A DNA stretch of 64,000 nucleotides from NCBI GenBank assembly GCA_964057225.1, contig OZ059896.1, forward strand, positions 13,082,001 to 13,146,000, read 5' to 3'. This document shows positions 27,400-54,574 of the stretch, piece by piece (the stretch's first letter is position 1; every line of letters starts with the position of its first letter). The stretch comes from Auanema rhodensis (taxonomy: Eukaryota; Animalia; Nematoda). The translations under genes and the position numbers were made by a program. The notes under the pieces are model-generated. The model had not been told where the DNA came from. It ran no database searches and was given only the letters and a program-made list of their open reading frames with translations.

Positions 27400-30300
27400 A
27401 CTAATATGGACATGGGTAATCTAATTTTGATAACCGCATCTCTTTATCTTTCACGGGAAGCGAGTCACATACCATGTGCACATCACGTGTACAATTAATT
27501 AGCATAAATTAAAGTTCACGTAAAGTTCAAAGTCATGGTTACCATGCACCAATATCAATAAAAATTTGTTCTTAGATTAATATGGACATGGGTAATCTAA
27601 TTTTGAAAACCGCATTTCTTTGTCTTTCACGGGAAGCGAGTCACATACCATGTGCACATCACGTGTACAATTAATTAGCATAAATTAAAGTTCACGTAAA
27701 GTTCAAAGTCATGGTTACCATGCACCAATATCGATAAAAATTTGTTCTTAGATTAATATCGACATGGGTAATCTAATTTTGAAAACCACATTTCTTTATC
27801 TTTCACGGGAAGCGAGTCACATACCATGTGCACATCACGTGTACAATTAATTAGCATAAATTAAAGTTCACGTTAATTTCAAAGTCATGGTTACCATGCA
27901 CCAATATCGATAAAAATTTGTTCTTAGATTAATATGGACATGGGTAATCTAATTTTGAAAACCGCATTTCTTTATCTTTCACGGGAAGCGAGTTACATAC
28001 CATGTGCACATCACGTGTACAATTAATTAGCAAAAATTAAAGTTCACGTAAATTTCAAAGTCATGGTTACCATGTATCAATAAAAATTTGTTATTAGACT
28101 AATATAGACATGAGGAATCTAATTTTGAAAATCGCATCTCTTTATCTTTAACGGGAAGCGAGTTACATACCATGTGCACATCACGTGTACAATTAATTAG
28201 CATAAATTAAAGTTCACGTTAATTTCAAAGTCATGGTTACCATGCACCAATATCGATAAAAATTTGTACTTAGACTAATATGGACATGGGGAATCTAATT
28301 TTGATAACCGCATCTCTTTATCTTTCACGGGAAGCGAGTCACATACCATGTGCACATCACGTGTACAATTAATTAGCATAAATTAAAGTTCACGTAAAGT
28401 TCAAAGTCATGGTTACCATGCACCAATATCAATAAAAATTTGTTCTTAGATTAATATGGACATGGGTAATCTAATTTTGAAAACCGCATTTCTTTGTCTT
28501 TCACGGGAAGCGAGTCACATACCATGTGCACATCACGTGTACAATTAATTAGCATAAATTAAAGTTCACGTAAAGTTCAAAGTCATGGTTACCATGCACC
28601 AATATCGATAAAAATTTGTTCTTAGATTAATATGGACATGGGTAATCTAATTTTGAAAACCACATTTCTTTATCTTTCACGGGAAGCGAGTCACATACCA
28701 TGTGCACATCACGTGTACAATTAATTAGCATAAATTAAAGTTCACGTTAATTTCAAAGTCATGGTTACCATGCACCAATATCGATAAAAATTTGTTCTTA
28801 GATTAATATGGACATGGGTAATCTAATTTTGAAAACCGCATTTCTTTATCTTTCACGGGAAGCGAGTTACATACCATGTGCACATCACGTGTACAATTAA
28901 TTAGCAAAAATTAAAGTTCACGTAAATTTCAAAGTCATGGTTACCATGTATCAATAAAAATTTGTTATTAGACTAATATAGACATGAGGAATCTAATTTT
29001 GAAAATCGCATCTCTTTATCTTTAACGGGAAGCGAGTTACATACCATGTGCACATCACGTGTACAATTAATTAGCATAAATTAAAGTTCACGTTAATTTC
29101 AAAGTCATGGTTACCATGCACCAATATCGATAAAAATTTGTACTTAGACTAATATGGACATGGGGAATCTAATTTTGAAAACCGCATCTCTTTATCTTTA
29201 ACGGGAAGCGAGTTATATATCATGTGCACATCACGTGTACAATTAATTCGCATAAATTAAAGTTCACGTAAATTTCAAAGTCATGGTTACCATGCACCAA
29301 TATGAATACAAATTTGTTATTAGACTAATATGGACATGAGGAATCTAATTTTGAGAACCGCATCTCTTTTATTTTTAACGGGAAGCGAGTTACATACCAT
29401 GTGCACATCACGTGTCAAATTAATTAGCATAAATTAAAGTTCACGTAAATTTCAAAGTCATGGTTACCATGCACCAATATCAATAAAAATTTGTTCTTAG
29501 ACTAATATGGACATGGGTAATCTATTTTTGAAAACCGCATCTCTTTATCTTTAACGGGAAGCGAGTTACATACCATGTGCACATCACGTGTACAATTAAT
29601 TCGCATAAATTAAAGTTCACGTAAATTTCAAAGTCATGGTTACCATGCACCAATATCAATAAAACTTTGTTCTCAGACTAATATGGACATGGGTAATCTA
29701 ATTTTGAGAACTGCATCTCTTTATCTTTCACGTAAAGCGAGTTACATACCAAGTGCAAATCACGTGTACAATTAATTAGCATAAATTAAAGTTCACGTAA
29801 ATTTCAAAGTCATGGTTACCATGCACCAATATGAATACAAATTTGTTATTAGACTAATATGGACATGAGGAATCTAATTTTGAGAACCGCATCTCTTTTA
29901 TCTTTAACGGGAAGCGAGTTACATACCATGTGCACATCACGTGTACAATTAATTAGCATAAATTAAAGTTCACGTAAAGTTCAAAGTCATGGTTACCATG
30001 AACCAATATCGATTAAAATTTGTTATTAGACTAATATGGACATGGGTAATCTAATTTTGAGAACTGCATCTATTTATCTTTCACGGGAAGCGAGTTACAT
30101 ACCATGTGCACATCACGTGTACAATTAATAAGCATATATTAAAGTTCACGTAAATTTCAAAGTCATGGTTACCATGCACCAATGTGAATACAAATTTGTT
30201 ATTAGACTAAAATGGACATGAGGAATCTAATTTTGAGAACCGCATCTCTTTATCTTTCACGTAAAGCAAGTTACATACCAAGTGCAAATCACGTGTACAA

Positions 30301-33300
30301 TTAATTAGCATAAATTAAAGTTCACGTAAATTTCAAAGTCATGGTTACCATGCACCAATATCAATAAAATTTTGTTCTTAGACTAATATGGACATGGGTA
30401 ATCTAATTTTGAAAACCGCATTTCTTTATCTTTCACGGGAAGCGAGTCACATACCATGTGCACATCACGTGTACAATTAATTAGCATAAATTAAAGTTCA
30501 CGTAAAGTTCAAAGTCATGGTTACCATGTATCAATAAAAATTTGTTATTAGACTAATATAGACATGAGGAATCTAACTTTGAAAATCGCATCTCTTTATC
30601 TTTAACGGGAAGCGAGTTACATACCATGTGCACATCACGTGTACAATTAATTAGCATAAATTAAAGTTCACGTAAATTTCAAAGTCATGGTTACCATGCA
30701 CCAATATCAATAAAACTTTGTTCTCAGACTAATATGGACATGGGTAATCTAATTTTGATAACCGCATCTCTTTATCTTTCACGGGAAGCGAGTCACATAC
30801 CATGGGCACATCACGTGTACAATTAATTAGCATAAATTAAAGTTCACGTAAAGTTTAAAGTCATGGTTACCATGCACCAATATCAATAAAAATTTGTTCT
30901 TAGATTAATATGGACATGGGTAATCTAATTTTGAAAACCGCATTTCTTTGTCTTTCACGGGAAGCGAGTCACATACCATGTGCACATCACGTGTACAATT
31001 AATTAGCATAAATTAAAGTTCACGTAAAGTTCAAAGTCATGGTTACCATGCACCAATATCGATAAAAATTTGTTCTTAGATTAATATGGACATGGGTAAT
31101 CTAATTTTGAAAACCACATTTCTTTATCTTTCACGGGAAGCGAGTCACATACCATGTGCACATCACGTGTACAATTAATTAGCATAAATTAAAGTTCACG
31201 TTAATTTCAAAGTCATGGTTACCATGCACCAATATCGATAAAAATTTGTTCTTAGATTACTATGGACATGGGTAATCTAATTTTGAAAACCGCATTTCTT
31301 TATCTTTCACGGGAAGCGAGTTACATACCATGTGCACATCACGTGTACAATTAAATAGCAAAAATTAAAGTTCACGTAAATTTCAAAGTCATGGTTACCA
31401 TGTATCAATAAAAATTTGTTATTAGACTAATATAGACATGAGGAATCTAATTTTGAAAATCGCATCTCTTTATCTTTAACGGGAAGCGAGTTACATACCA
31501 TGTGCACATCACGTGTACAATTAATTAGCATAAATTAAAGTTCACGTTAATTTCAAAGTCATGGTTAACATGCACCAATATCGATAAAAATTTGTACTTA
31601 GACTAATATGGACATGGGGAATCTAATTTTGATAACCGCATCTCTCTATCTTTCACGGGAAGCGAGTCACATACCATGTGCACATCACGTGTACAATTAA
31701 TTAGCATAAATTAAAGTTCACGTAAAGTTCAAAGTCATGGTTACCATGCACCAATATCAATAAAAATTTGTTCTTAGATTAATATGGACATGGGTAATCT
31801 AATTTTGAAAACCGCATTTCTTTGTCTTTCACGGGAAGCGAGTCACATACCATGTGCACATCACGTGTACAATTAATTAGCATAAATTAAAGTTCACGTA
31901 AAGTTCAAAGTCATGGTTACCATGCACCAATATCGATAAAAATTTGTTCTTAGATTAATATGGACATGGGTAATCTAATTTTGAAAACCACATTTTTTTA
32001 TCTTTCACGGGAAGCGAGTCACATACCATGTGCACATCACGTGTACAATTAATTAGCATAAATTAAAGTTCACGTTAATTTCAAAGTCATGGTTACCATG
32101 CACCAATATCGATAAAAATTTGTTCTTAGATTAATATGGACATGGGTAATCTAATTTTGAAAACCGCATTTCTTTATCTTTCACGGGAAGCGAGTTACAT
32201 ACCATGTGCACATCACGTGTACAATTAATTAGCAAAAATTAAAGTTCACGTAAATTTCAAAGTCATGGTTACCATGTATCAATAAAAAATTGTTATTAGA
32301 CTAATATAGACATGAGGAATCTAATTTTGAAAATCGCATCTCTTTATCTTTAACGGGAAGCGAGTTACATACCATGTGCACATCACGTGTACAATTAATT
32401 AGCATAAATTAAAGTTCACGTTAATTTCAAAGTCATGGTTACCATGCACCAATATCGATAAAAATTTGTTCTTAGATTAATATGGACATGGGTAATCTAA
32501 TTTTGAAAACCACATTTTTTTATCTTTCACGGGAAGCGAGTCACATACCATGTGCACATCACGTGTACAATTAATTAGCATAAATTAAAGTTCACGTTAA
32601 TTTCAAAGTCATGGTTACCATGCACCAATATCGATAAAAATTTGTTCTTAGATTAATATGGACATGGGTAATCTAATTTTGAAAACCGCATTTCTTTATC
32701 TTTCACGGGAAGCGAGTTACATACCATGTGCACATCACGTGTACAATTAATTAGCAAAAATTAAAGTTCACGTAAATTTCAAAGTCATGGTTACCATGTA
32801 TCAATAAAAAATTGTTATTAGACTAATATAGACATGAGGAATCTAATTTTGAAAATCGCATCTCTTTATCTTTAACGGGAAGCGAGTTACATACCATGTG
32901 CACATCACGTGTACAATTAATTAGCATAAATTAAAGTTCACGTTAATTTCAAAGTCATGGTTACCATGCACCAATATCGATAAAAATTTGTACTTAGACT
33001 AATATGGACATGGGGAATCTAATTTTGATAACCGCATCTCTTTATCTTTCACGGGAAGCGAGTCACATACCATGTGCACATCACGTGTACAATTAATTAG
33101 CATAAATTAAAGTTCACGTAAAGTTCAAAGTCATGGTTACCATGCACCAATATCAATAAAAATTTGTTCTTAGATTAATATGGACATGGGTAATCTAATT
33201 TTGAAAACCGCATTTCTTTGTCTTTCACGGGAAGCGAGTCACATACCATGTGCACATCACGTGTACAATTAATTAGCATAAATTAAAGTTCACGTAAAGT

Positions 33301-34200
33301 TGAAAGTCATGGTTACCATGCACCAATATCGATAAAAATTTGTTCTTAGATTAATATGGACATGGGTAATCTAATTTTGAAAACCACATTTCTTTATCTT
33401 TCACGGGAAGCGAGTCACATACCATGTGCACATCACGTGTACAATTAATTAGCATAAATTAAAGTTCACGTTAATTTCAAAGTCATGGTTACCATGCACC
33501 AATATCGATAAAAATTTGTTCTTAGATTAATATGGACATGGGTAATCTAATTTTGAAAACCGCATTTCTTTATCTTTCACGGGAAGCGAGTTACATACCA
33601 TGTGCACATCACGTGTACAATTAATTAGCAAAAATTAAAGTTCACGTAAATTTCAAAGTCATGGTTACCATGTATCAATAAAAATTTGTTATTAGACTAA
33701 TATAGACATGAGGAATCTAATTTTGAAAATCGCATCTCTTTATCTTTAACGGGAAGCGAGTTACATACCATGTGCACATCACGTGTACAATTAATTAGCA
33801 TAAATTAAAGTTCACGTTAATTTCAAAGTCATGGTTACCATGCACCAATATCGATAAAAATTTGTACTTAGACTAATATGGACATGGGGAATCTAATTTT
33901 GAAAACCGCATCTCTTTATCTTTAACGGGAAGCGAGTTATATATCATGTGCACATCACGTGTACAATTAATTCGCATAAATTAAAGTTCACGTAAATTTC
34001 AAAGTCATGGTTACCATGTATCAATAAAAATTTGTTATTAGACTAATATAGACATGAGGAATCTAATTTTGAAAATCGCATCTCTTTATCTTTAACGGGA
34101 AGCGAGTTACATACCATGTGCACATCACGTGTACAATTAATTAGCATAAATTAAAGTTCACGTTAATTTCAAAGTCATGGTTACCATGCACCAATATCGA
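27400..34200 (+). repeat. 874-bp 5-mer HOR containing a 170-bp deleted monomer (interrupted; ends approximate)
   Basis: AGCAAAAATTAA variant at 28031/28905, 31359/32233 and 32755/33629. Each pair is 874 bp apart (5x176-6). Confidence 0.8.
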
Positions 34201-35953
34201 TAAAAATTTGTACTTAGACTAATATGGACATGGGGAATCTAATTTTGAAAACCGCATCTCTTTATCTTTAACGGGAAGCGAGTTATATATCATGTGCACA
34301 TCACGTGTACAATTAATTCGCATAAATTAAAGTTCACGTAAATTTCAAAGTCATGGTTACCATGCACCAATATGAATACAAATTTGTTATTAGACTAATA
34401 TGGACATGAGGAATCTAATTTTGAGAACCGCATCTCTTTTATCTTTAACGGGAAGCGAGTTACATACCATGTGCACATCACGTGTACAATTAATTAGCAT
34501 AAATTAAAGTTCACGTAAAGTTCAAAGTCATGGTTACCATGCACCAATATCAATAAAAATTTGTTCTTAGACTAATATGGACATGGGTAATCTATTTTTG
34601 AAAACCGCATCTCTTTATCTTTAACGGGAAGCGAGTTACATACCATGTGCACATCACGTGTACAATTAATTCGCATAAATTAAAGTTCACGTAAATTTCA
34701 AAGTCATGGTTACCATGCACCAATATCAATAAAACTTTGTTCTCAGACTAATATGGACATGGGTAATCTAATTTTGAGAACTGCATCTCTTTATCTTTCA
34801 CGTAAAGCGAGTTACATACCAAGTGCAAATCACGTGTACAATTAATTAGCATAAATTAAAGTTCACGTAAATTTCAAAGTCATGGTTACCATGCACCAAT
34901 ATGAATACAAATTTGTTATTAGACTAATATGGACATGAGGAATCTAATTTTGAGAACCGCATCTCTTTTATCTTTAACGGGAAGCGAGTTACATACCATG
35001 TGCAAATCACGTGTACAATTAATTAGCATAAATTAAAGTTCACGTAAATTTCAAAGTCATGGTTACCATGCACCAATATCAATAAAATTTTGTTCTTAGA
35101 CTAATATGGACATGGGTAATCTAATTTTGAAAACCGCATTTCTTTATCTTTCACGGGAAGCGAGACATACCATGTGCACATCACGTGTACAATTAATTAG
35201 CATAAATTAAAGTTCACGTAAATTTCAAAGTCATGGTTACCATGCACCAATATCAATAAAATTTTGTTCTTAGACTAATATGGACATGGGTAATCTAATT
35301 TTGAAAACCGCATTTCTTTATCTTTCACGGGAAGCGAGACATACCATGTGCACATCACGTGTACAATTAATTAGCATAAATTAAAGTTCACGTAAATTTC
35401 AAAGTCATGGTTACCATGCACCAATATCAATAAAACTTTGTTCTCAGACTAATATGGACATGGGTAATCTAATTTTGAAAACCGCATCTCTTTATCTTTC
35501 ACGGGAAGCGAGTCACATACCATGTGCACATCACGTGTACAATTAATTAGCATAAATTAAAGTTCACGTAAATTTCAAAGTCATGGTTACCATGCACCAA
35601 TATCAATAAAAATTTGTTCTTAGATTAATATGGACATGGGTAATCTAATTTTGAAAACCGCATTTCTTTGTCTTTCGCGGGAAGCGAGTCACATACCATG
35701 TGCACATCACGTGTACAATTAATTAGCATAAATTAAAGTTCACGTAAAGTTCAAAGTCATGGTTACCATGCACCAATATCAATAAAAATTTGTTCTTAGA
35801 CTAATATGGACATGGGTAATCTAATTTTGAAAACCGCATTTCTTTATCTTTCACGGGAAGCGAGTTACATACCATGTGCACATCACGTGTACAATTAATT
35901 AGCATAAATTAAAGTTCACGTTAATTTCAAAGTCATGGTTACCATGCACCAAT

Positions 35954-37068
35954 CTATTCTTGATAAGTTTACCAAGAGAATGTGAAAGTTTTTTACGACG
36001 AGATTCATCATGATGATGATAAGAACAACTGAGTTTTTTTATATGAGATGAGAGTTTTAAAATATCTCGGTCAATCTTCTTTTTTCTTCTTTCTTGTTTT
36101 TTGGGAACGCAGCTATCAATGACCGAGTGAAGAATGTGAACAAGTTTAGAGTAAGAATCTAAAGGAGTGAGACCGGAGAGATGATTAGCGAAATCAATTT
36201 TGGCTAGTCTATGATTGATGAGATTGTAGTCAGCAGCTTGAAAATTGCGATCAGAAAACATAGGTAATGCTACCGGAGACAAAGTATTAGAAGAGCTGAT
36301 TGTATTAGCTAACTGAAAAGAGTCTGAAACAATTTGGAAAACCACAGAATGGTGATCCGAGGAGCCGAGGGGGGAAGAACGGGATATGTTGTCTACACTG
36401 GATATGTTATCAGTGATAACATAATCAAGAATGTTCTTGCCTCTGGTAGGGAACTTTACCAACTGATGAGAACAGCTATCGTTGAGAAATTGAAGAATAG
36501 ATCTACTAGAGGAGCATGGTTGAGAGCAAATACCAAGGTCCCAGTTGATTTTAGGAAAATTTAGATCGCCCGTTAGGAAGAACGATCGTTTGGAAATTTG
36601 TTTACGTAGATCAGAAAGAAACGAAATGAAATCTGAATGAGAAGCTGTTGGAGGACGATAACAAAGTGAGAAAACAGCATTAAGTGAAGGTATGAGTAAG
36701 TTAATGAATTGTATAGAAGATTGAGGAGAAGAACAGGAAAGAAGAAAAGGTTTGATATGACTTTTAATATAGAGGACAACACCACCACCACGTGAGAGAC
36801 ACCTATCGGCTCTAAAAATAGTGTAAGTATCTTTACATGGGAGTAGGTGGGTATCGAACTCAGGAAAAAGCCATGATTCTGATATTGCAATTATATCAGG
36901 AGTGGATAAAGAAATAACGTGGGATAGTATATGAAGTTTGTTAAGAATAGAACGTGCATTAAAACACTGAAATGAGAGGCTGGTAGGATGTGAGACAGGG
37001 GGGGTTGAAGACGTGACAGTGTTAACGAAAGGACATTTTGTCAGACGTGAGACGTTGAGATGTATTGT
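35954..37068 (-). pseudogene. LINE ORF2 N-terminus: apurinic/apyrimidinic-like endonuclease (APE) plus linker, truncated before reverse transcriptase
   Basis: The frame of track ORF 35899..36462 stays open a further 202 codons upstream, to a TGA at 37071-37069. Manual translation: ...SFQCFNARSILNKL...PDIIAISESWL...IFRADRCLSRGGGVVLYIK...CYRPP...FLTGDLNFPKINW...QLVKFPTRGKNILDYVIT...PLGSSDHHSV. These are the canonical APE motifs (N, E, GGGV, YRPP, GD.N, D, SDH). The last ~17 aa of the track ORF are satellite read-through. Confidence 0.93.
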
Positions 37069-37201
37069 TCATGCTAACAGATCTGGTATTTTGATCTGTG
37101 GTTAATTTTGCGGATCGTGGTGGATTTTTGCGACGTCTTGGGCTAACAGAAGAACGCTTGTCTTTTGACGTGCGGTTCTGTCTTTCCTTCGACCGGCTCA
37201 T
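37022..37201 (-). CDS. 59-aa basic Arg/Ser-rich ORF between ORF1 and ORF2; probably the frameshifted C-terminus of ORF1
   Basis: ATG at 37201-37199 overlaps the ORF1 stop (ATGA). Reads MSRSKERQNRTSKDKRSSVSPRRRKNPPRSAKLTTDQNTRSVSMNNTSQRLTSDKMSFR*. One extra base in the G5 run at 37218-37222 would fuse it to ORF1. Confidence 0.5.
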   Translation of the reverse strand: MSRSKERQNRTSKDKRSSVSPRRRKNPPRSAKLTTDQNTRSVSMNNTSQRLTSDKMSFR

Positions 37202-38085
37202 TCTACCAGATTTACAAGGGGGCTAGAAAAAAGAGTTGGGGATGTGAGAGTTTGAGAATGGAGTGTTGGTAATGGAACGTTGTGAATAGATGGTATTTTA
37301 GGAGTTTGATTACAAGAAGAAGTAGGAGCTATTTGAGGGTTTGGAGGATCGGCTGGATTGCGGGAAATTTCAATAAGTCGAAGATCTCGTACCAAAAAGA
37401 CAGACTTAGTGTTGTTTTTGTTTTTTTCTTTTGCTTCCTCGCGAAGGTTGTTTTCCAGTTGAATTTCAGAAGGAAGATAGTCGCGACGTACAAAAGTTTT
37501 AGATAAAGATTCGAAACATTTAGTCTTATTTGCTTTGATAGATGTTATGATCTTATCCCGCAATTCAACCGATGGACAAGTAATAATGAGTGGGCCTGGG
37601 GATTTAGATTTAAGGATGCAACGTGTAATGGTTATTTGGTTAGTGTTAAGGAGAGTTGACAAAGTAGTGTCGTTGGATTTCTCAATGACCAGTTTCAGTA
37701 AAGAAGAAGGGTCAGAAGGTAAATCCGGGCAAGAGACTGGTACACGGAACCAGAGGGCTCTCTTACAACGATAATCGTACTTTGTCTCCTCTGATCTAAT
37801 TTTTTGGATTTGGCATGCAACATTGGAAGAAGAAAGAAGAGGTGAGTTATGGGTGGTGTTAGGAATAGTGCAAGAGAGTTGAGTTAACTTCTGCTCCAAC
37901 TTATCGAGACGCGATTTGAAATTGGTTTCGATGAGTTTTATGCGTGAGTCATGCGATGCAACTGCGGTTTTGATACTACTGAGCTCGTGTCTTATTTGTA
38001 CTGAAAGTTCAGCAAAAGAGTTATGTAAAGAATCGGAAAGTGATTCGAGGGCAGTAGTAAGAAACTCGTTAGTTACGTGAGACAT
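37198..38085 (-). CDS. LINE ORF1 protein (N-terminal coiled coil, RRM-like region, C-terminal domain)
   Basis: 295-aa ATG-initiated ORF directly upstream of the APE frame. Heptad-rich N-terminus (LSSIKTAVASHDSRIKLIETNFKSRLDKLEQKL). Motifs PGPLIITCPSVELRDKII and FVRRDYLPSEIQLENNLREEAKEKN...FLVRDLRL resemble ORF1 of invertebrate (notably nematode) CR1-type LINEs, recognised from memory. Pro/Ser/Thr-rich tail. Confidence 0.85.
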   Translation of the reverse strand: MSHVTNEFLTTALESLSDSLHNSFAELSVQIRHELSSIKTAVASHDSRIKLIETNFKSRLDKLEQKLTQLSCTIPNTTHNSPLLSSSNVACQIQKIRSEETKYDYRCKRALWFRVPVSCPDLPSDPSSLLKLVIEKSNDTTLSTLLNTNQITITRCILKSKSPGPLIITCPSVELRDKIITSIKANKTKCFESLSKTFVRRDYLPSEIQLENNLREEAKEKNKNNTKSVFLVRDLRLIEISRNPADPPNPQIAPTSSCNQTPKIPSIHNVPLPTLHSQTLTSPTLFSSPLVNLVE

Positions 38086-38256
38086 AGTTAAGTAATAGAA
38101 GGTAAAAAGAATGAAATAAGAGACAAGTAAGGAGAGAAAAAAAAAGAAGAGTTTTGGAAAAAAGAAAGATAGAAATGGGAAAAAAGAGCGTACCTTGAAA
38201 AACCAGTCCGGCGTTAGTATTAAACTGAGAGTACGAGTAGGAGCCGACCAACCAGG
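38086..38256 (-). promoter_or_regulatory. LINE 5' UTR unique part with long polypyrimidine tract
   Basis: Lies between the tandem repeats and the ORF1 ATG. The sense strand is mostly T/C over ~38090-38190. Confidence 0.65.
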
Positions 38257-38631
38257 ATGAGGTCAAATCGCGGAATGAGGTCAAATCGCGGAATGAGGTT
38301 AAATCGCGGAATGAGGTTAAATCGCGGAATGAGGTCAAATCGCGGAATGAGGTCAAATCGCGGAATGAGGTCAAATCGCGGAATGAGGTCAAATCGCGGA
38401 ATGAGGTCAAATCGCGGAATGAATCGCGGAATGAGAGGTCAAATCGCGGAATGAGAGGTCAAATCGCGGAATGAGGTCAAATCGCGGAATGAGGTCAAAT
38501 CGCGGAATGAGAGGTCAAATCGCGGAATGAGAGGTCAAATCGGGGAATGAGGTCAAATCGCGGAATGAGAGGTCAAATCGCGGAATATGAGGTCAAATCG
38601 CGGAATGAGGTCAAATCGCGGAATGAGAGGT
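38257..38631 (-). repeat. 18-20-bp minisatellite (ATGAGGTCAAATCGCGGA on +), ~20 copies, at the 5' end of the LINE
   Basis: Units start at 38257, 38275, 38293 and so on. Variants have +GA or +AT (20 bp), one 12-bp deleted unit (38419), GGTTAAAT and TCGGGGA. Confidence 0.97.
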
Positions 38632-39166
38632 GACACGTGATGTGCACATGGTATGTAACTCGCTTCCCGTTAAAGATAAAGAGATGCGGTTTTCAAAATT
38701 AGATTACCCATGTCCATATTAGTCTAAGAACAAATTTTCATTGATATTGGTGCATGGTAACCATGACTTTGAAATTTACGTGAACTTTAATTTATGCTAA
38801 TTAATTGCACACGTGATGTGCACATGGTATGTAACTCGCTTCCCGTTAAAGATAAAGAGATGCGGTTCTCAAAATTAGTTTACCCATGTTCATATTAGTC
38901 TGAGAACAAATTTTTATTGATATTGGTTCATGGTAACCATGACTTTGAAATTTACGTGAACTTTAATTTATGCTAATTAATTGTACACGTGATGTGCACA
39001 TGGTATGTAACTCGCTTCCCGTTAAAGATAAAGAGATGCGGTTTTCAAAATTAGATTACCCATGTCCATATTAGTCTAAGTACAAATTTTTATTGATATT
39101 GGTTCATGGTAACCATGACTTTGAAATTTACGTGAACTTTAATTTATGCTAATTAATTGTACACGT

Positions 39167-39337
39167 TTGAACGGGTTTATTGTTCGAATCACAGGTTATA
39201 ATCGGAAAACAAGGCTAATAAATCGGGAAAATTGCAGATATTCAAAAGAACCTTACAATACAAACATACTTGTAATAATTGACTAAATATATGTACAAGA
39301 AACAGGTTCAGCATATTTCCTTTTACAATGATATAAA
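39167..39337 (-). mobile_element. 171-bp insert copy 1 (probable 5'-truncated LINE 3' UTR), ACGT TSD
   Basis: TGTAC-ACGT|TTGAACGGGTTTATTG...GATATAAA|ACGT-GATGTG. The - strand is T-rich and ends AATAAA-CCCGTTCAA. Private variant AAGGCTAATA. Confidence 0.75.
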
Positions 39338-42300
39338 ACGTGATGTGCACATGGTATGTAACTCGCTTCCCGTGAAAGAGAAAGAAATGCGGTTCTCCAA
39401 ATTAGATTCCTCATGTCCATTTTAGTCTAATAAGAAATTTTTATTGATATTGGTGCATGGTAACCATGACTTTGAAATTTACGTGAACTTTAATTTATGC
39501 TAATTAATTGTACACGTGATGTGCACATGGTATGTAACTCGCTTCCCGTGAGAGATAAAGAGATTCAGTTCTCGAAATTAGATTACCCATGTCCATATTA
39601 GTCTAAGTACAAAGTTTTATTGATATTGGTGCATGGTAACCATGACTTTGGAATTTACGTGAACTTTAATTTATGCTAATTAATTGTACACGTGATGTGC
39701 ACATGGTATGTAACTCGCTTCCCGTGAGAGATAAAGAGATTCAGTTCTCGAAATTAGATTCCTCATGTCCATTTTAGTCTAATAACAAATTTTTATTGAT
39801 ACATGGTAACCATGACTTTGAAATTAACGTGAATTTTAATTTATGCTAATTAATTGTACACGTGATGTGCACATGGTATGTAACTCGCTTCCCGTGAGAG
39901 ATAAAGAGATTCAGTTCTCGAAATTAGATTACCCATGTCCATATTAGTCTAAGAACAAATTTTCATTGATATTGGTGCATGGTAACCATGACTTTGAAAT
40001 TTACGTGAACTTTAATTTATGCTAATTAAATGTACACGTAATGTGCACATGGTATGTAACTCGCTTCCCGTGAAAGATAAAAGAAATGCGGTTCTCAAAA
40101 TCAGATTCCTCATGTCCATTTTAGTCTAATAACAAATTTTTATTGATACATGGTAACCATGACTTTGAAATTAACGTGAACTTTAATTTATGCTAATTAA
40201 TTGTACACGTGATGTGCACATGGTATGTAACTCGCTTCCCGTTAAAGATAAAGAGATGCGGTTCTCAAAATTAGTTTACCCATGTTCATATTAGTCTGAG
40301 AACAAATTTTTATTGATATTGGTGCATGGTAATATGACTTTGAAATTTACGTGAACTTTAATTTATGCTAATTAATTGTACACGTAATGTGCACATGGTA
40401 TGTAACTCGCTTCCCGTGAAGGATATAGAAATGCGGTTTTCAAAATTAGATTCCTCATGTCCATATTAGTCTAAGAAGAAATTTTAATCGATATTGGTTC
40501 ATGGTAACCATGACTTTGAATTTTACGTGAACTTTAATTTATGCTAATTAATTGTACACGTGATGTGCACATGGTATGTAACTCGCTTCCCGTTAAAGAT
40601 AAAGAGATGCGGTTTTCAAAATTAGATTCCTCATGTCCATATTAGTCTAAGAACAAATTTTAATCGATATTGGTTCATGGTAACCATGACTTTGAAATTT
40701 ACGTGAACTTTAATTTATGCTAATTAATTGTACACGTGATGTGCACATGGTATGTAACTCGCTTCCCGTGAGAGATAAAGAGATTCAGTTCTCGAAATTA
40801 GATTACCCATGTCCATATTAGTCTAAGTACAAAGTTTTATTGATATTGGTGCATGGTAACCATGACTTTGAAATTTACGTGAACTTTAATTTATGCTAAT
40901 TAATTGTACACGTGATGTGCACATGGTATGTAACTCGCTTCCCGTTAAAGATAAAGAGATGCGGTTTTCAAAATTAGATTACCCATGTCCATATTAGTCT
41001 GAAAACAAATTTTTATTGATATTGGTTCATGGTAACCATGACTTTGAAATTTACGTGAACTTTAATTCATGCTAATTAATTGTACACGTGATGTGCACAT
41101 GGTATGTAACTCGCTTCCCGTTAAAGATAAAGAGATGCGGTTTTCAAAATTAGATTACCCATGTCCATATTAGTCTAAGAACAAATTTTCATTGATATTG
41201 GTGCATGGTAACCATGACTTTGAATTTTACGTGAACTTTAATTTATGCTAATTAATTGCACACGTGATGTGCACATGGTATGTAACTCGCTTCCCGTTAA
41301 AGATAAAGAGATGCGGTTCTCAAAATTAGTTTACCCATGTTCATATTAGTCTGAGAACAAATTTTTATTGATATTGGTTCATGGTAACCATGACTTTGAA
41401 ATTTACGTGAACTTTAATTCATGCTAATTAATTGTACACGTGATGTGCACATGGTATGTAACTCGCTTCCCGTGAAAGATAAAAGAAATGCGGTTCTCAA
41501 AATCAGATTCCTCATGTCCATTTTAGTCTAATAACAAATTTTTATTGATACATGGTAACCATGACTTTGAAATTAACGTGAACTTTAATTTATGCTAATT
41601 AATTGTACACGTGATGTGCACATGGTATGTAACTCGCTTCCCGTTAAAGATAAAGAGATGCGGTTTTCAAAATTAGATTACCCATGTCCATATTAGTGTG
41701 AGAACAAAGTTTTATTGATATTGGTGCATGGTAATATGACTTTGAAATTTACGTGAACTTTAATTTATGCTAATTAATTGTACATGTAATGTGCACATGG
41801 TATGTAACTCGCTTCCCGTGAAGGATATAGAAATGCGGTTTTCAAAATTAGATTCCTCATGTCCATATTAGTCTAAGAACAAATTTTAATCGATATTGGT
41901 TCATGGTAACCATGACTTTGAATTTTACGTGAACTTTAATTTATGCTAATTAATTGTACACGTGATGTGCACATGGTATGTAACTCGCTTCCCGTTAAAG
42001 ATAAAGAGATGCGGTTTTCAAAATTAGATTACCCATGTCCATATTAGTCTGAAAACAAATTTTTATTGATATTGGTTCATGGTAACCATGACTTTGAAAT
42101 TTACGTGAACTTTAATTCATGCTAATTAATTGTACACGTGATGTGCACATGGTATGTAACTCGCTTCCCGTTAAAGATAAAGAGATGCGGTTCTCAAAAT
42201 TAGTTTACCCATGTTCATATTAGTCTAAGAACAAATTTTAATCGATATTGGTTCATGGTAACCATGACTTTGAAATTTACGTGAACTTTAATTTATGCTA

Positions 42301-45300
42301 ATTAATTGCACACGTGATGTGCACATGGTATGTAACTCGCTTCCCGTGAGAGATAAAGAGATTCAGTTCTCGAAATTAGATTACCCATGTCCATATTAGT
42401 CTAATTACAAAGTTTTATTGATATTGGTGCATGGTAACCATGACTTTGAAATTTACGTGAACTTTAATTTATGCTAATTAATTGTACACGTGATGTGCAC
42501 ATGGTATGTAACTCGCTTCCCGTTAAAGATAAAGAGATGCGGTTTTCAAAATTAGATTCCTCATGTCCATATTAGTCTAAGAACAAATTTTAATCGATAT
42601 TGGTTCATGGTAACCATGACTTTGAATTTTACGTGAACTTTAATTTATGCTAATTAATTGTACACGTGATGTGCACATGGTATGTAACTCGCTTCCCGTT
42701 AAAGATAAAGAGATGCGGTTTTCAAAATTAGATTCCTCATGTCCATATTAGTCTAAGAACAAATTTTAATCGATATTGGTTCATGGTAACCATGACTTTG
42801 AAATTTACGTGAACTTTAATTTATGCTAATTAATTGTACACGTGATGTGCACATGGTATGTAACTCGCTTCCCGTTAAAGATAAAGAGATGCGGTTTTCA
42901 AAATTAGATTCCTCATGTCCATATTAGTCTAAGAACAAATTTTAATCGATATTGGTTCATGGTAACCATGACTTTGAAATTTACGTGAACTTTAATTTAT
43001 GCTAATTAATTGTACACGTGATGTGCACATGGTATGTAACTCGCTTCTCGTGAGAGATAAAGAGATTCAGTTCTCGAAATTAGATTCCTCATGTCCATTT
43101 TAGTCTAATAACAAATTTTTATTGATACATGGTAACCATGACTTTGAAATTAACGTGAATTTTAATTTATGCTAATTAATTGTACACGTGATGTGCACAT
43201 GGTATGTAACTCGCTTCCCGTTAAAGATAAAGAGATGCGGTTCTCAAAATTAGTTTACCCATGTTCATATTAGTCTGAGAACAAATTTTTATTGATATTG
43301 GTGCATGGTAATATGACTTTGAAATTTACGTGAACTTTAATTTATGCTAATTAATTGTACACGTAATGTGCACATGGTATGTAACTCGCTTCCCGTGAAG
43401 GATATAGAAATGCGGTTTTCAAAATTAGATTCCTCATGTCCATATTAGTCTAAGAACAAATTTTAATCGATATTGGTTCATGGTAACCATGACTTTGAAT
43501 TTTACGTGAACTTTAATTTATGCTAATTAATTGTACACGTGATGTGCACATGGTATGTAACTCGCTTCCCGTTAAAGATAAAGAGATGCGGTTTTCAAAA
43601 TTAGATTCCTCATGTCCATATTAGTCTAAGAACAAATTTTAATCGATATTGGTTCATGGTAACCATGACTTTGAAATTTACGTGAACTTTAATTTATGCT
43701 AATTAATTGTACACGTGATGTGCACATGGTATGTAACTCGCTTCCCGTGAGAGATAAAGAGATTCAGTTCTCGAAATTAGATTACCCATGTCCATATTAG
43801 TCTAAGTACAAAGTTTTATTGATATTGGTGCATGGTAACCATGACTTTGAAATTTACGTGAACTTTAATTTATGCTAATTAATTGTACACGTGATGTGCA
43901 CATGGTATGTAACTCGCTTCCCGTTAAAGATAAAGAGATGCGGTTTTCAAAATTAGATTACCCATGTCCATATTAGTCTGAAAACAAATTTTTATTGATA
44001 TTGGTTCATGGTAACCATGACTTTGAAATTTACGTGAACTTTAATTCATGCTAATTAATTGTACACGTGATGTGCACATGGTATGTAACTCGCTTCCCGT
44101 TAAAGATAAAGAGATGCGGTTTTCAAAATTAGATTACCCATGTCCATATTAGTCTAAGAACAAATTTTCATTGATATTGGTGCATGGTAACCATGACTTT
44201 GAATTTTACGTGAACTTTAATTTATGCTAATTAATTGCACACGTGATGTGCACATGGTATGTAACTCGCTTCCCGTTAAAGATAAAGAGATGCGGTTCTC
44301 AAAATTAGTTTACCCATGTTCATATTAGTCTGAGAACAAATTTTTATTGATATTGGTTCATGGTAACCATGACTTTGAAATTTACGTGAACTTTAATTCA
44401 TGCTAATTAATTGTACACGTGATGTGCACATGGTATGTAACTCGCTTCCCGTTAAAGATAAAGAGATGCGGTTTTCAAAATTAGATTACCCATGTCCATA
44501 TTAGTCTAAGAACAAATTTTAATCGATATTGGTTCATGGTAACCATGACTTTGAAATTTACGTGAACTTTAATTTATGCTAATTAAATGTACACGTAATG
44601 TGCACATGGTATGTAACTCGCTTCCCGTGAAAGATAAAAGAAATGCGGTTCTCAAAATCAGATTCCTCATGTCCATTTTAGTCTAATAACAAATTTTTAT
44701 TGATACATGGTAACCATGACTTTGAAATTAACGTGAACTTTAATTTATGCTAATTAATTGTACACGTGATGTGCACATGGTATGTAACTCGCTTCCCGTT
44801 AAAGATAAAGAGATGCGGTTTTCAAAATTAGATTACCCATGTCCATATTAGTGTGAGAACAAAGTTTTATTGATATTGGTGCATGGTAATATGACTTTGA
44901 AATTTACGTGAACTTTAATTTATGCTAATTAATTGTACATGTAATGTGCACATGGTATGTAACTCGCTTCCCGTGAAGGATATAGAAATGCGGTTTTCAA
45001 AATTAGATTCCTCATGTCCATATTAGTCTAAGAACAAATTTTAATCGATATTGGTTCATGGTAACCATGACTTTGAATTTTACGTGAACTTTAATTTATG
45101 CTAATTAATTGTACACGTGATGTGCACATGGTATGTAACTCGCTTCCCGTTAAAGATAAAGAGATGCGGTTTTCAAAATTAGATTACCCATGTCCATATT
45201 AGTCTGAAAACAAATTTTTATTGATATTGGTTCATGGTAACCATGACTTTGAAATTTACGTGAACTTTAATTCATGCTAATTAATTGTACACGTGATGTG

Positions 45301-47576
45301 CACATGGTATGTAACTCGCTTCCCGTTAAAGATAAAGAGATGCGGTTCTCAAAATTAGTTTACCCATGTTCATATTAGTCTAAGAACAAATTTTAATCGA
45401 TATTGGTTCATGGTAACCATGACTTTGAAATTTACGTGAACTTTAATTTATGCTAATTAATTGCACACGTGATGTGCACATGGTATGTAACTCGCTTCCC
45501 GTGAGAGATAAAGAGATTCAGTTCTCGAAATTAGATTACCCATGTCCATATTAGTCTAATTACAAAGTTTTATTGATATTGGTGCATGGTAACCATGACT
45601 TTGAAATTTACGTGAACTTTAATTTATGCTAATTAATTGTACACGTGATGTGCACATGGTATGTAACTCGCTTCCCGTTAAAGATAAAGAGATGCGGTTT
45701 TCAAAATTAGATTCCTCATGTCCATATTAGTCTAAGAACAAATTTTAATCGATATTGGTTCATGGTAACCATGACTTTGAAATTTACGTGAACTTTAATT
45801 TATGCTAATTAATTGTACACGTGATGTGCACATGGTATGTAACTCGCTTCCCGTTAAAGATAAAGAGATGCGGTTTTCAAAATTAGATTCCTCATGTCCA
45901 TATTAGTCTAAGAACAAATTTTAATCGATATTGGTTCATGGTAACCATGACTTTGAAATTTACGTGAACTTTAATTCATGCTAATTAATTGTACACGTGA
46001 TGTGCACATGGTATGTAACTCGCTTCCCGTGAGAGATAAAGAGATTCAGTTCTCGAAATTAGATTACCCATGTCCATATTAGTCTAATTACAAAGTTTTA
46101 TTGATATTGGTGCATGGTAACCATGACTTTGAAATTTACGTGAACTTTAATTTATGCTAATTAATTGTACACGTGATGTGCACATGGTATGTAACTCGCT
46201 TCCCGTTAAAGATAAAGAGATGCGGTTTTCAAAATTAGATTCCTCATGTCCATATTAGTCTAAGAACAAATTTTAATCGATATTGGTTCATGGTAACCAT
46301 GACTTTGAAATTTACGTGAACTTTAATTTATGCTAATTAATTGTACACGTGATGTGCACATGGTATGTAACTCGCTTCCCGTTAAAGATAAAGAGATGCG
46401 GTTTTCAAAATTAGATTCCTCATGTCCATATTAGTCTAAGAACAAATTTTAATCGATATTGGTTCATGGTAACCATGACTTTGAAATTTACGTGAACTTT
46501 AATTTATGCTAATTAATTGTACACGTGATGTGCACATGGTATGTAACTCGCTTCTCGTGAGAGATAAAGAGATTCAGTTCTCGAAATTAGATTCCTCATG
46601 TCCATTTTAGTCTAATAACAAATTTTTATTGATACATGGTAACCATGACTTTGAAATTAACGTGAATTTTAATTTATGCTAATTAATTGTACACGTGATG
46701 TGCACATGGTATGTAACTCGCTTCCCGTTAAAGATAAAGAGATGCGGTTTTCAAAATTAGATTACCCATGTCCATATTAGTCTGAAAACAAAGTTTTATT
46801 GATATTGGTGCATGGTAACCATGACTTTGAAATTTACGTGAACTTTAATTTATGCTAATTAATTGTACACGTGATGTGCACATGGTATGTAACTCGCTTC
46901 CCGTTAAAGATAAAGAGATGCGGTTTTCAAAATTAGATTACCCATGTCCATATTAGTCTGAAAACAAATTTTTATTGATATTGGTTCATGGTAACCATGA
47001 CTTTGAAATTTACGTGAACTTTAATTCATGCTAATTAATTGTACACGTGATGTGCACATGGTATGTAACTCGCTTCCCGTTAAAGATAAAGAGATGCGGT
47101 TTTCAAAATTAGATTACCCATGTCCATATTAGTCTAAGAACAAATTTTCATTGATATTGGTGCATGGTAACCATGACTTTGAAATTTACGTGAACTTTAA
47201 TTTATGCTAATTAATTGCACACGTGATGTGCACATGGTATGTAACTCGCTTCCCGTTAAAGATAAAGAGATGCGGTTCTCAAAATTAGTTTACCCATGTT
47301 CATATTAGTCTGAGAACAAATTTTTATTGATATTGGTTCATGGTAACCATGACTTTGAAATTTACGTGAACTTTAATTTATGCTAATTAATTGTACACGT
47401 GATGTGCACATGGTATGTAACTCGCTTCCCGTTAAAGATAAAGAGATGCGGTTTTCAAAATTAGATTACCCATGTCCATATTAGTCTAAGTACAAATTTT
47501 TATTGATATTGGTTCATGGTAACCATGACTTTGAAATTTACGTGAACTTTAATTTATGCTAATTAATTGTACACGT

Positions 47577-47747
47577 TTGAACGGGTTTATTGTTCGAATC
47601 ACAGGTTATAATCGGAAAACAAGGTTAATAAATCGGGAAAATTGCAGATATTCAAAAGAACCTTACAATACAAACATACTTGTAATAATTGACTAAATAT
47701 ATGTACAAGAAACAGGTTCAGCATATTTCCTTTTACAATGATATAAA
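47577..47747 (-). mobile_element. 171-bp insert copy 2
   Basis: Same sequence and ACGT flanks as copy 1. Confidence 0.75.
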
Positions 47748-48455
47748 ACGTGATGTGCACATGGTATGTAACTCGCTTCCCGTGAAAGAGAAAGAAATGC
47801 GGTTCTCCAAATTAGATTACCCATGTCCATATTAGTCTAAGAACAAATTTTCATTGATATTGGTGCATGGTAACCATGACTTTGAAATTTACGTGAACTT
47901 TAATTCATGCTAATTAATTGTACACGTGATGTGCACATGGTATGTAACTCGCTTCCCGTTAAAGATAAAGAGATGCGGTTTTCAAAATTAGATTACCCAT
48001 GTCCATATTAGTCTAAGAACAAATTTTCATTGATATTGGTGCATGGTAACCATGACTTTGAAATTTACGTGAACTTTAATTTATGCTAATTAATTGCACA
48101 CGTGATGTGCACATGGTATGTAACTCGCTTCCCGTTAAAGATAAAGAGATGCGGTTCTCAAAATTAGTTTACCCATGTTCATATTAGTCTGAGAACAAAT
48201 TTTTATTGATATTGGTTCATGGTAACCATGACTTTGAAATTTACGTGAACTTTAATTTATGCTAATTAATTGTACACGTGATGTGCACATGGTATGTAAC
48301 TCGCTTCCCTTGAGAGATAAAGAGATTCAGTTCTCGAAATTAGATTACCCATGTCCATATTAGTCTAAGTACAAAGTTTTATTGATATTGGTGCATGGTA
48401 ACCATGACTTTGGAATTTACGTGAACTTTAATTTATGCTAATTAATTGTACACGT

Positions 48456-48626
48456 TTGAACGGGTTTATTGTTCGAATCACAGGTTATAATCGGAAAACA
48501 AGGTTAATAAATCGGGAAAATTGCAGATATTCAAAAGAACCTTACAATACAAACATACTTGTAAAAATTGACTAAATATATGTACAAGAAACAGGTTCAG
48601 CATATTTCCTTTTACAATGATATAAA
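48456..48626 (-). mobile_element. 171-bp insert copy 3
   Basis: Same junctions; private variant GTAAAAATTG. Confidence 0.75.
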
Positions 48627-51251
48627 ACGTGATGTGCACATGGTATGTAACTCGCTTCCCGTGAAAGATAAAGAAATGCGGTTTTCAAAATTAGATTCCT
48701 CATGTCCATTTTAGTCTAATAACAAATTTTTATTGATACATGGTAACCATGACTTTGAAATTAACGTGAATTTTAATTTATGCTAATTAATTGTACACGT
48801 GATGTGCACATGGTATGTAACTCGCTTCCCGTTAAAGATAAAGAGATGCGGTTTTCAAAATTAGATTACCCATGTCCATATTAGTCTGAAAACAAATTTT
48901 TATTGATATTGGTTCATGGTAACCATGACTTTGAAATTTACGTGAACTTTAATTCATGCTAATTAATTGTACACGTGATGTGCACATGGTATGTAACTCG
49001 CTTCCCGTTAAAGATAAAGAGATGCGGTTTTCAAAATTAGATTACCCATGTCCATATTAGTCTGAAAACAAATTTTTATTGATATTGGTTCATGGTAACC
49101 ATGACTTTGAAATTTACGTGAACTTTAATTTATGCTAATTAAATGTACACGTAATGTGCACATGGTATGTAACTCGCTTCCCGTGAAGGATATAGAAATG
49201 CGGTTTTCAAAATTAGATTCCTCTTGTCCATTTTAGTCTAATAACAAATTTTTATTGATACATGGTAACCATGACTTTGAAATTAACGTGAACTTTAATT
49301 TATGCTAATTAATTGTACACGTGATGTGCACATGGTATGTAACTCGCTTCCCGTTAAAGATAAAGAGATGCGGTTTTCAAAATTAGATTACCCATGTCCA
49401 TATTAGTGTGAGAACAAAGTTTTATTGATATTGGTGCATGGTAATATGACTTTGAAATTTACGTGAACTTTAATTTATGCTAATTAATTGTACACCTAAT
49501 GTGCACATGGTATGTAACTCGCTTCCCGTGAAGGATATAGAAATGCGGTTTTCAAAATTAGATTCCTCTTGTCCATATTAGTCTAAGAACAAATTTTAAT
49601 CGATATTGGTTCATGGTAACCATGACTTTGAATTTTACGTGAACTTTAATTTATGCTAATTAATTGTACACGTGATGTGCACATGGTATGTAACTCGCTT
49701 CCCGTTAAAGATAAAGAGATGCGGTTTTCAAAATTAGATTCCTCATGTCCATATTAGTCTAAGAACAAATTTTAATCGATATTGGTTCATGGTAACCATG
49801 ACTTTGAAATTAACGTGAATTTTAATTTATGCTAATTAATTGTACACGTGATGTGCACATGGTATGTAACTCGCTTCCCGTGAGAGATAAAGAGATTCAG
49901 TTCTCGAAATTAGATTACCCATGTCCATATTAGTCTAAGTACAAAGTTTTATTGATATTGGTGCATGGTAACCATGACTTTGAAATTTACGTGAACTTTA
50001 ATTTATGCTAATTAATTGTACACGTGATGTGCACATGGTATGTAACTCGCTTCCCGTTAAAGATAAAGAGATGCGGTTTTCAAAATTAGATTACCCATGT
50101 CCATATTAGTCTGAAATCAAATTTTTATTGATATTGGTTCATGGTAACCATGACTTTGAAATTTACGTGAACTTTAATTCATGCTAATTAATTGTACACG
50201 TGATGTGCACATGGTATGTAACTCGCTTCCCGTTAAAGATAAAGAGATGCGGTTTTCAAAATTAGATTCCTCATGTCCATATTAGTCTAAGAACAAATTT
50301 TAATCGATATTGGTTCATGGTAACCATGACTTTGAAATTTACGTGAACTTTAATTTATGCTAATTAATTGTACACGTGATGTGCACATGGTATGTAACTC
50401 GCTTCCCGTGAGAGATAAAGAGATTCAGTTCTCGAAATTAGATTCCTCATGTCCATTTTAGTCTAATAACAAATTTTTATTGATACATGGTAACCATGAC
50501 TTTGAAATTAACGTGAATTTTAATTTATGCTAATTAATTGTACACGTGATGTGCACATGGTATGTAACTCGCTTCCCGTGAGAGATAAAGAGATTCAGTT
50601 CTCGAAATTAGATTACCCATGTCCATATTAGTCTGAAAACAAATTTTTATTGATATTGGTTCATGGTAACCATGACTTTGAAATTTACGTGAACTTTAAT
50701 TTATGCTAATAAATTGTACACGTGATGTGCACATGGTATGTAACTCGCTTCCCGTTAAAGATAAAGAGATGCGGTTTTCAAAATTAGATTACCCATGTCC
50801 ATATTAGTCTGAAAACAAATTTTTATTGATATTGGTTCATGGTAACCATGACTTTGAAATTTACGTGAACTTTAATTCATGCTAATTAATTGTACACGTG
50901 ATGTGCACATGGTATGTAACTCGCTTCCCGTTAAAGATAAAGAGATGCGGTTTTCAAAATTAGATTACCCATGTCCATATTAGTCTAAGAACAAATTTTC
51001 ATTGATATTGGTGCATGGTAACCATGACTTTGAAATTTACGTGAACTTTAATTTATGCTAATTAATTGTACACGTGATGTGCACATGGTATGTAACTCGC
51101 TTCCCGTCAAAGATAAAGAGATGCGGTTTTCAAAATTAGATTACCCATGTCCATATTAGTCTAAGTACAAATTTTTATTGATATTGGTTCATGGTAACCA
51201 TGACTTTGAAATTTACGTGAACTTTAATTTATGCTAATTAATTGTACACGT

Positions 51252-51422
51252 TTGAACGGGTTTATTGTTCGAATCACAGGTTATAATCGGAAAACAAGGT
51301 TAATAAATCGGGAAAATTGCAGATATTCAAAAGAACCTTACAATACAAACATACTTGTAATAATTGACTAAATATATGTACAAGAAACAGGTTCAGCATA
51401 TTTCCTTTTACAATGATATAAA
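51252..51422 (-). mobile_element. 171-bp insert copy 4
   Basis: Same sequence and junctions. Confidence 0.75.
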
Positions 51423-51778
51423 ACGTGATGTGCACATGGTATGTAACTCGCTTCCCGTGAAAGAGAAAGAAATGCGGTTCTCCAAATTAGATTCCTCATG
51501 TCCATTTTAGTCTAATAAGAAATTTTTATTGATATTGGTGCATGGTAACCATGACTTTGAAATTTACGTGAACTTTAATTTATGCTAATTAATTGTACAC
51601 GTGATGTGCACATGGTATGTAACTCGCTTCCCGTGAGAGATAAAGAGATTCAGTTCTCGAAATTAGATTACCCATGTCCATATTAGTCTAAGTACAAAGT
51701 TTTATTGATATTGGTGCATGGTAACCATGACTTTGGAATTTACGTGAACTTTAATTTATGCTAATTAATTGTACACGT

Positions 51779-51949
51779 TTGAACGGGTTTATTGTTCGAA
51801 TCACAGGTTATAATCGGAAAACAAGGTTAATAAATCGGGAAAATTGCAGATATTCAAAAGAACCTTACAATACAAACATACTTGTAATAATTGACTAAAT
51901 ATATGTACAAGAAACAGGTTCAGCATATTTCCTTTTACAATGATATAAA
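51779..51949 (-). mobile_element. 171-bp insert copy 5
   Basis: Same sequence and junctions; 527 bp after copy 4. Confidence 0.75.
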
Positions 51950-53349: not shown

Positions 53350-53520
53350 TTGAACGGGTTTATTGTTCGAATCACAGGTTATAATCGGAAAACAAGGTTA
53401 ATAAATCGGGAAAATTGCAGATATTCAAAAGAACCTTACAATACAAACATACTTGTAATAATTGACTAAATATATGTACAAGAAACAGGTTCAGCATATT
53501 TCCTTTTACAATGATATAAA
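53350..53520 (-). mobile_element. 171-bp insert copy 6
   Basis: Same sequence and junctions. Confidence 0.75.
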
Positions 53521-53876
53521 ACGTGATGTGCACATGGTATGTAACTCGCTTCCCGTGAAAGAGAAAGAAATGCGGTTCTCCAAATTAGATTCCTCATGTC
53601 CATTTTAGTCTAATAAGAAATTTTTATTGATATTGGTGCATGGTAACCATGACTTTGAAATTTACGTGAACTTTAATTTATGCTAATTAATTGTACACGT
53701 GATGTGCACATGGTATGTAACTCGCTTCCCGTGAGAGATAAAGAGATTCAGTTCTCGAAATTAGATTACCCATGTCCATATTAGTCTAAGTACAAAGTTT
53801 TATTGATATTGGTGCATGGTAACCATGACTTTGGAATTTACGTGAACTTTAATTTATGCTAATTAATTGTACACGT

Positions 53877-54047
53877 TTGAACGGGTTTATTGTTCGAATC
53901 ACAGGTTATAATCGGAAAACAAGGTTAATAAATCGGGAAAATTGCAGATATTCAAAAGAACCTTACAATACAAACATACTTGTAATAATTGACTAAATAT
54001 ATGTACAAGAAACAGGTTCAGCATATTTCCTTTTACAATGATATAAA
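53877..54047 (-). mobile_element. 171-bp insert copy 7
   Basis: Same sequence and junctions; 527 bp after copy 6. Confidence 0.75.
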
Positions 54048-54403: not shown

Positions 54404-54574
54404 TTGAACGGGTTTATTGTTCGAATCACAGGTTATAATCGGAAAACAAGGTTAATAAATCGGGAAAATTGCAGATATTCAAATGAACCTTACAATACAA
54501 ACATACTTGTAATAATTGACTAAATATATGTACAAGAAACAGGTTCAGCATATTTCCTTTTACAATGATATAAA
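54404..54574 (-). mobile_element. 171-bp insert copy 8
   Basis: Same junctions; private variant TTCAAATGAACC; 527 bp after copy 7. Confidence 0.75.

Follow-up and report, generated by a model that had tools for sequence, protein, structure and literature searches.

The satellite array on contig OZ059896.1 of the nematode Auanema rhodensis carries two foreign sequences whose 5' ends lie 2 bp apart at one CACGTG site of the repeat unit, with the same polarity. The window, a stretch of 64,000 nucleotides (assembly GCA_964057225.1, positions 13,082,001 to 13,146,000), consists throughout of this 176-bp satellite, and foreign DNA among its approximately 350 monomers is confined to one 2679-bp block at 35954-38632 and eight copies of a single 171-bp insert. 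The block is a fragment of a retrotransposon without long terminal repeats (a non-LTR retrotransposon), or long interspersed nuclear element (LINE), with an apurinic/apyrimidinic (AP)-type endonuclease (APE); the insert resembles the 3' end of such an element. We see evenly balanced chances that a single APE-type LINE lineage inserted twice in the window, by separate target-primed events, at the same spot of the monomer. A shade less probable, in our judgement, is the fuller proposal that a LINE outside the R1 and Tx1 clades (CR1-like) has true specificity for ATC^ACGTGT of the 176-bp monomer, uses the arrays as a safe harbour and has had its fragments co-amplified into new higher-order repeats.

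Junctions within the satellite monomer

Read in element sense, that is, on the minus strand, the 5' end of the large fragment meets the satellite as CGAGTTACATACCATGTGCACATCACGTGT/CACCTCTCATTCCGCG (38633/38632; a slash marks the junction throughout), or, with a longer flank, as ...CATGTGCACATCACGTGT/CACCTCTCATTCCGCG. In the same sense the insert reads ...GTGCACATCACGT/TTTATATC...CCCGTTCAA/ACGTGTACAATT and, with wider ends, ...GTGCACATCACGT/TTTATATCATTG...AACAATAAACCCGTTCAA/ACGTGTACAATT, its 5' side abutting the satellite at ...CACATCACGT/. An intact monomer has this ACGT once, whereas the insert is flanked by ACGT on both sides, as a 4-bp target-site duplication. The coordinates of these junctions (Table 1) agree with those of an earlier note on this DNA, which had also placed the two 5' junctions 2 bp apart in the monomer with the same polarity; this is confirmed, and both junctions lie in the same array orientation. 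The nick geometry proposed there fits the 4-bp duplication, with the bottom strand nicked at TC^ACGT and the top strand cut at a variable position.

The polarity that had been assumed for the insert is supported by two observations, which together speak for minus-strand sense. First, an AATAAA signal lies 9 nt before its 3' end. Second, among Logan contigs from four public sequencing runs (X1, X2, X4 and X6), which are too short to show insertion contexts, an 834-bp contig of run X1 carries 39169-39333 on the minus strand at its positions 670-834. The alignment stops 4 bp inside the 5' boundary of the insert and, among the matches listed, the 669 upstream letters of the contig are unaligned to the window; its depth (54.8) is comparable with the 35-56 of the LINE body in that run. 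To judge from these sequences, the insert thus behaves as the 5'-truncated 3' end of a longer element with minus-strand polarity. It ends in ...AATAAACCCGTTCAA, with neither poly(A) nor a microsatellite, and is a candidate LINE 3' end only.

Other identities for the insert were considered and rejected. Its local alignment score against the monomer falls within that of shuffled sequences, so that it is not a diverged monomer; fold z-scores are approximately 0 on both strands, and no Rfam family, tRNA included, matches at E-values up to 10. Similarly, a copy of the insertion site within the last 171 nt of the element was dismissed, the best match (13/17) being equalled by 7 of 300 shuffles at a length chosen post hoc.

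Table 1 Features of the window, in order of position; strand is given relative to the forward strand of the contig.
Feature	Position	Strand	Basis or remark
Satellite array, orientation A, ~205 monomers	1..35953	+	Tandem Repeats Finder, anchor spacing
Break point: LINE cut within ORF2, then satellite of opposite orientation at an unrelated monomer position (...CACCAAT/)	35953..35954		
Non-LTR retrotransposon fragment, from the 5' end to ~130 codons past the endonuclease domain, without reverse transcriptase or 3' end	35954..38632	-	
AP-type endonuclease domain, open frame	36283..37005	-	Pfam PF14529, PF03372
UCC_UUU_CGU_UAA, end of the frame following ORF1	37022..37033	-	
ORF1 (295 aa here), coiled-coil-like N-terminal part	37198..38085	-	
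5' untranslated tandem array, ~20 units of 18-20 bp, sense TCCGCGATTTGACCTCAT	38257..38627	-	Tandem Repeats Finder
Target site flanking the 5' end of the large element, sense ...CACATCACGTGT/	38633..38644	-	
Satellite array, orientation B on the plus strand (orientation A in element sense)	38633..64000	-	Tandem Repeats Finder, anchor spacing
ACGT, 4-bp target-site duplication	39163..39166, other copy 39338-39341		Junction sequence
171-bp foreign insert, read as the 5'-truncated 3' end of a retroelement	39167..39337	-	
AATAAA, 9 nt before the 3' end of the insert, minus-strand sense	39176..39181	-	
Seven further insert copies, at 47577, 48456, 51252, 51779, 53350, 53877 and 54404, each +170	47577..54574	-	98.8-99.4% identical

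Amplification of the insert

In the window, all eight copies of the insert are truncated at one point, which leaves 171 bp, and have the same duplication; between copies 0-2 bases differ. Their flanking monomers fall into two classes per side that are 100% identical within a class, against approximately 95% for random monomers, and the copies are spaced either 879 bp (insert plus four monomers) or 527 bp (insert plus two monomers) apart. Insertions truncated independently would end at different points; the common end indicates that a single insertion was multiplied by unequal exchange. The eight copies therefore count as one amplified event, and the earlier claim of two independent events in the window, one for the LINE and one for the insert, stands.

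With its duplication the insert measures 175 bp, nearly one monomer, so that the phase of the array is almost kept. The 527-bp repeat unit is found as two adjacent copies (51252, 51779) and as three consecutive ones (53350, 53877, 54404). The truncated fragment has in this way become a pseudo-monomer that seeded a repeat unit of its own.

Structure and affinities of the large fragment

The LINE fragment, present in a single copy in the window, has on the minus strand the order 5' tandem array, open reading frame 1 (ORF1) and an open frame with the AP-type endonuclease, and it stops at 35954. The reverse transcriptase (RT) domain that would follow the endonuclease is absent from this copy, and since the LINE ends before any RT is reached, the copy is truncated rather than representative of a family that lacks RT.

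The endonuclease domain matches Pfam families PF14529 (E 8.5e-10) and PF03372 (E 2.9e-6), and in an alignment with 40 relatives it retains the nearly invariant columns E43, D147, N149, D194 and S216-D217-H218. An AlphaFold 2 (AF2) model of the domain has a mean predicted local distance difference test (pLDDT) score of 92.4, and its top match in the PDB is the human L1 endonuclease (E 4.6e-12, template modelling (TM) score 0.73), with TRAS1 at rank 24; a single-sequence search of the PDB returned no match. The Pfam matches, the kept residues and the structural similarity to L1 bear out the earlier identification of the large piece, which on this evidence is a non-LTR element of the APE type whose endonuclease domain is intact.

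When the endonuclease and its relatives are combined into a profile, the E-value for the L1 endonuclease is 3e-14, against 2e-4 for TRAS1, so that membership in the R1 clade is not indicated by this comparison, a crude test made without RT. A search of 1.8 billion representative proteins gave closest matches of only 33-36% identity, nearly all of them unnamed, which ruled out assigning a clade through endonuclease relatives; the few named hits come from fish, sea urchin and crab. Many of the relatives are ORF2-sized (890-950 aa), and this protein size together with the Pfam type makes the label 'CR1-like' plausible.

ORF1 found no relatives by exact look-up or homologue search, and no zinc-knuckle family, esterase or PHD match in Pfam. 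It stops at 37198 in the window copy, which has five G in the run at 37215-37219 (plus strand) where contigs have six; the six-G state is found in all contigs of three of the four runs and in about half of the contig depth of the fourth. The endonuclease frame lacks an AUG and is open in +1 across UCC_UUU_CGU_UAA (37022-37033), a sequence that is a possible candidate for a +1 frameshift site. Contigs of all four runs, which carry the labels of three different organisms, match the LINE body (35954-38286) at approximately 99% identity. Furthermore, contigs approximately 10% diverged from the window copy are present in every run, consistent with a second LINE subfamily. In the 5' tandem array, which directly adjoins the satellite and may be a repeated internal promoter, 18-bp units are interleaved with 20-bp variants carrying an extra GA/TC.

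The other end of the large element, ...ATCAAGAATAG/ATTGGTGCATGGTAACC in element sense, joins satellite of the opposite orientation approximately 70 bp from the CACGTG of the monomer. Target-primed reverse transcription starts at the 3' end of its template, and 3'-truncated copies are not a normal product. The 3' half of this copy was probably removed later, by an inversion, another rearrangement or an assembly misjoin. An origin of the strand switch by inverted duplication or fold-back was rejected, because identity between the two arrays is no higher than background and there is no mirror symmetry.

Significance of the shared site

How much the coincidence of the two junctions means depends on the target preference assumed. 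The earlier note had put its chance at 1-2%, and this figure holds ((5/176)/2 = 1.4%) if position and orientation are uniform. It does not hold if TC^ACGT is a preferred site: in element-sense orientation TCACGT occurs twice per monomer, at ATCACGTGTAC and GTTCACGTAAA, and a preference for this short motif raises the chance of coincidence to approximately 50%. What the window shows is a target-site preference within the monomer and not specificity for the satellite; a satellite-targeting LINE is plausible, and two events in one window fit such an element but cannot prove it. Besides the 2-bp distance and the shared polarity, the reading of two insertions by one lineage draws on the lack of any other kind of interruption in the array, on the open, confidently folded endonuclease domain with its conserved residues, and on an insert that is foreign to the monomer, has its AATAAA in the required sense and is matched by a longer contig that fits a parent element.

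Beyond the duplicated motif, several observations weigh against two insertions by one lineage. The independent events at this site number only two in the window: the insert contributes a 3' junction, and the large element a 5' junction at a distance of 2 bp. The large copy has a 5' junction only, so that its priming site is not visible; this junction could have arisen by rearrangement and not by the cutting of the second strand, because the other end of the element adjoins inverted satellite at an unrelated position. Contigs bridging 35953/35954 or 38632/38633 are absent among those listed from the four runs, whose contigs are short. The insert and the large element share no sequence, in keeping with the caveat of the earlier note that the two pieces do not overlap. 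Finally, the insert is not covered by any contig of X2 or X4, two runs that do contain the LINE body, and such holes prove nothing.

The strongest competing explanation, though we think it unlikely, is an ordinary short target preference (a motif of 4-6 nt, such as TC^ACGT) with no satellite specificity, in which the same motifs are hit genome-wide and one or two positions per monomer are simply the only good sites in a homogeneous satellite. Because the monomer offers two positions with TCACGT and two with ACGT, in both senses, a second hit at the same position would be unsurprising. Most APE LINE clades show only short preferences. Nearly all reported sequence-specific families, moreover, belong to the restriction-like endonuclease (RLE), Tx1 and R1 groups, and the CR1 group is not listed among them (PMC4640811). 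On the other hand, the second TCACGT site is unoccupied in approximately 350 monomers.

Less probable still is an insert unrelated to the LINE, whether another retroposon, an element resembling a short interspersed nuclear element (SINE) or filler at a break, with the CACGTG palindrome being fragile or protein-bound and gathering breaks and joins. The lack of common sequence and of insert-covering contigs in X2 and X4 would agree with this, as would the position of the other LINE end at a strand switch, which indicates that the array has suffered breakage, and the resemblance, by our own reading, of GTTCGAATC on the plus strand to an RNA polymerase III (pol III) B box. Yet a 5'-truncated retroelement fits the clean duplication of 4 bp, the AATAAA close to the end and the contig that extends further, and the Rfam search argues against a tRNA-like or other RNA-derived sequence. 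An assembly artefact or late rearrangement, which would leave the CACGTGT junction as no insertion junction and the window with a single real event, would account for a satellite that flips strand exactly at the element, for the 3' truncation and for the missing bridging contigs, but is improbable, since the arrays lack the mirror symmetry of a fold-back palindrome and a complete-looking 5' tandem array meets the satellite at most 2 bp from the other event, for which a random misjoin has a chance of approximately 1.4%.

Proposed mechanism

Returning to two insertions by one LINE lineage, we infer that the fragment and the insert belong to one family, which would favour this place in the satellite above others in the genome. 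Under the standard target-primed model, the ACGT duplication implies a bottom-strand nick opposite TC^ACGT. The endonuclease would accordingly nick the bottom strand at 5'-ACGT^GATG-3', opposite TC^ACGT of ATCACGTGTAC on the element-sense strand, and the freed ...CACGT-3' end would prime reverse transcription from the tail-less 3' end of the RNA (...AAUAAACCCGUUCAA). The top strand would be cut 4-6 nt downstream of the first nick: after ACGT in the small copy and, if the first nick was the same, after ACGTGT in the large one. A 3' junction of insert-type ends would read ...TTCAA/ACGTGTAC.

One event would have stopped at 171 nt, leaving the ACGT duplication, and unequal exchange in the array would then have raised it to at least eight copies. 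The second would have reached full length, with the 5' tandem array joined after CACGTGT, and later have lost its 3' half at the satellite strand switch, through one of the routes named above. Precise tail-less junctions have been described for R1-type elements. Here they could arise if a transcript reads a few bases into the downstream target and pairs with the ...CACGT-3' primer; with a self-complementary ACGT and a poly(A) signal only 9 nt from the end, a read-through transcript could pair in this manner.

With few exceptions, the known sequence-specific APE LINEs belong to the R1 and Tx1 clades; they offer natural cases of RNA-templated site-specific insertion that can be retargeted. If the proposal is correct, an independent origin of specificity would be a third case of an AP-type endonuclease gaining a long recognition site. 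A target in a complex satellite monomer with a palindromic core would sharpen the question of how long recognition sites arise, and the system would show a mobile element and a satellite shaping each other.

Comparison with known systems

The targets of reported sequence-specific LINEs comprise rRNA, small nuclear RNA (snRNA) and tRNA genes, spliced-leader exons, transposons, microsatellites and telomeric repeats. The literature searched, which left out most subscription papers, yielded no autonomous APE LINE described as specific for a single position of a complex satellite monomer. The R1-clade LINEs (R1 itself, TRAS1 and SART1 in telomeric repeats, Waldo and Mino in microsatellites) resemble the candidate in their APE-type endonuclease, multicopy tandem-repeat target, fixed insertion position and orientation, precise tail-less ends and variable 5' junction. 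They differ in that the candidate target here is one position of a complex 176-bp monomer, that the window endonuclease falls much closer to L1 than to TRAS1, and that ORF1 has no zinc-knuckle match.

Tx1-clade LINEs (Tx1L, Keno, Mutsu, Kibi, Koshi) likewise encode an APE and are specific for repeated sequences (PMC4640811). Unlike these, the window endonuclease has its nearest relatives in ORF2 proteins of approximately 890-950 aa. L1/Tx1-type ORF2 proteins are longer than this. CR1/L2-type LINEs share the PF14529-type endonuclease, ORF2 relatives of approximately 900 aa and, if the insert is the 3' end of this LINE, the lack of a poly(A) tail, whereas the candidate 3' end here carries no microsatellite and ORF1 matches neither esterase nor PHD families. 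We know of no CR1-group element that is sequence-specific.

Two other elements are associated with satellites. YURE of Ciona has a weak preference for a U2-derived satellite (PMC4640811) and is thus, like the candidate, a non-LTR element preferring a satellite repeat; unlike it, YURE has a restriction-like endonuclease, and its preference derives from targeting of the U2 snRNA gene. Cp1 of Chironomus pallidivittatus is described, in the article that cites the original report, as a short SINE-like retroposon placed site-specifically in centromeric tandem repeats (Liao et al. 1998, J Mol Biol 280:811, cited in PMC4210444). By that description, Cp1 is a pol III SINE-like element of a midge in a different satellite, in contrast to the candidate autonomous LINE considered here. 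The target repeat in Chironomus is reportedly 155 bp long.

The satellite array

Tandem Repeats Finder places the strand flip of the satellite at 35953/38633, and the consensus monomers of the left and right arrays agree at all but 2 of 176 positions; monomers paired at random show 94-95% identity. Anchoring on a conserved 17-mer, we measured distances of 170-177 bp between consecutive monomers in the left array, which has no foreign insert, and of 170-181 bp in the right array, apart from eight spacings of 351 bp. No other kinds of interruption were found in the 61 kb of array.

This satellite's 20-mers are not in the paper on the '176 bp satellite' of Bradysia (PMC12051294), which describes another satellite, and a literature search with them gave no match. 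Exact-pattern scans of metagenome and prokaryote genome collections with the insert 3' end and the satellite core also gave none.

The target ATCACGTG, present in every monomer (for example 35527-35537), is an E-box, and it also fits the consensus RTCACRTG of the budding-yeast centromere element CDEI. If a host protein binds this sequence, it could hold the element in place there, either in the stead of the endonuclease or together with it.

Each of the two arrays (18866-34114 and 39690-55267) has a recurring 170-bp deletion variant of the monomer, often at 874-bp intervals, as at 27126, 28000 and 28874. This recurrence indicates a five-monomer higher-order repeat.

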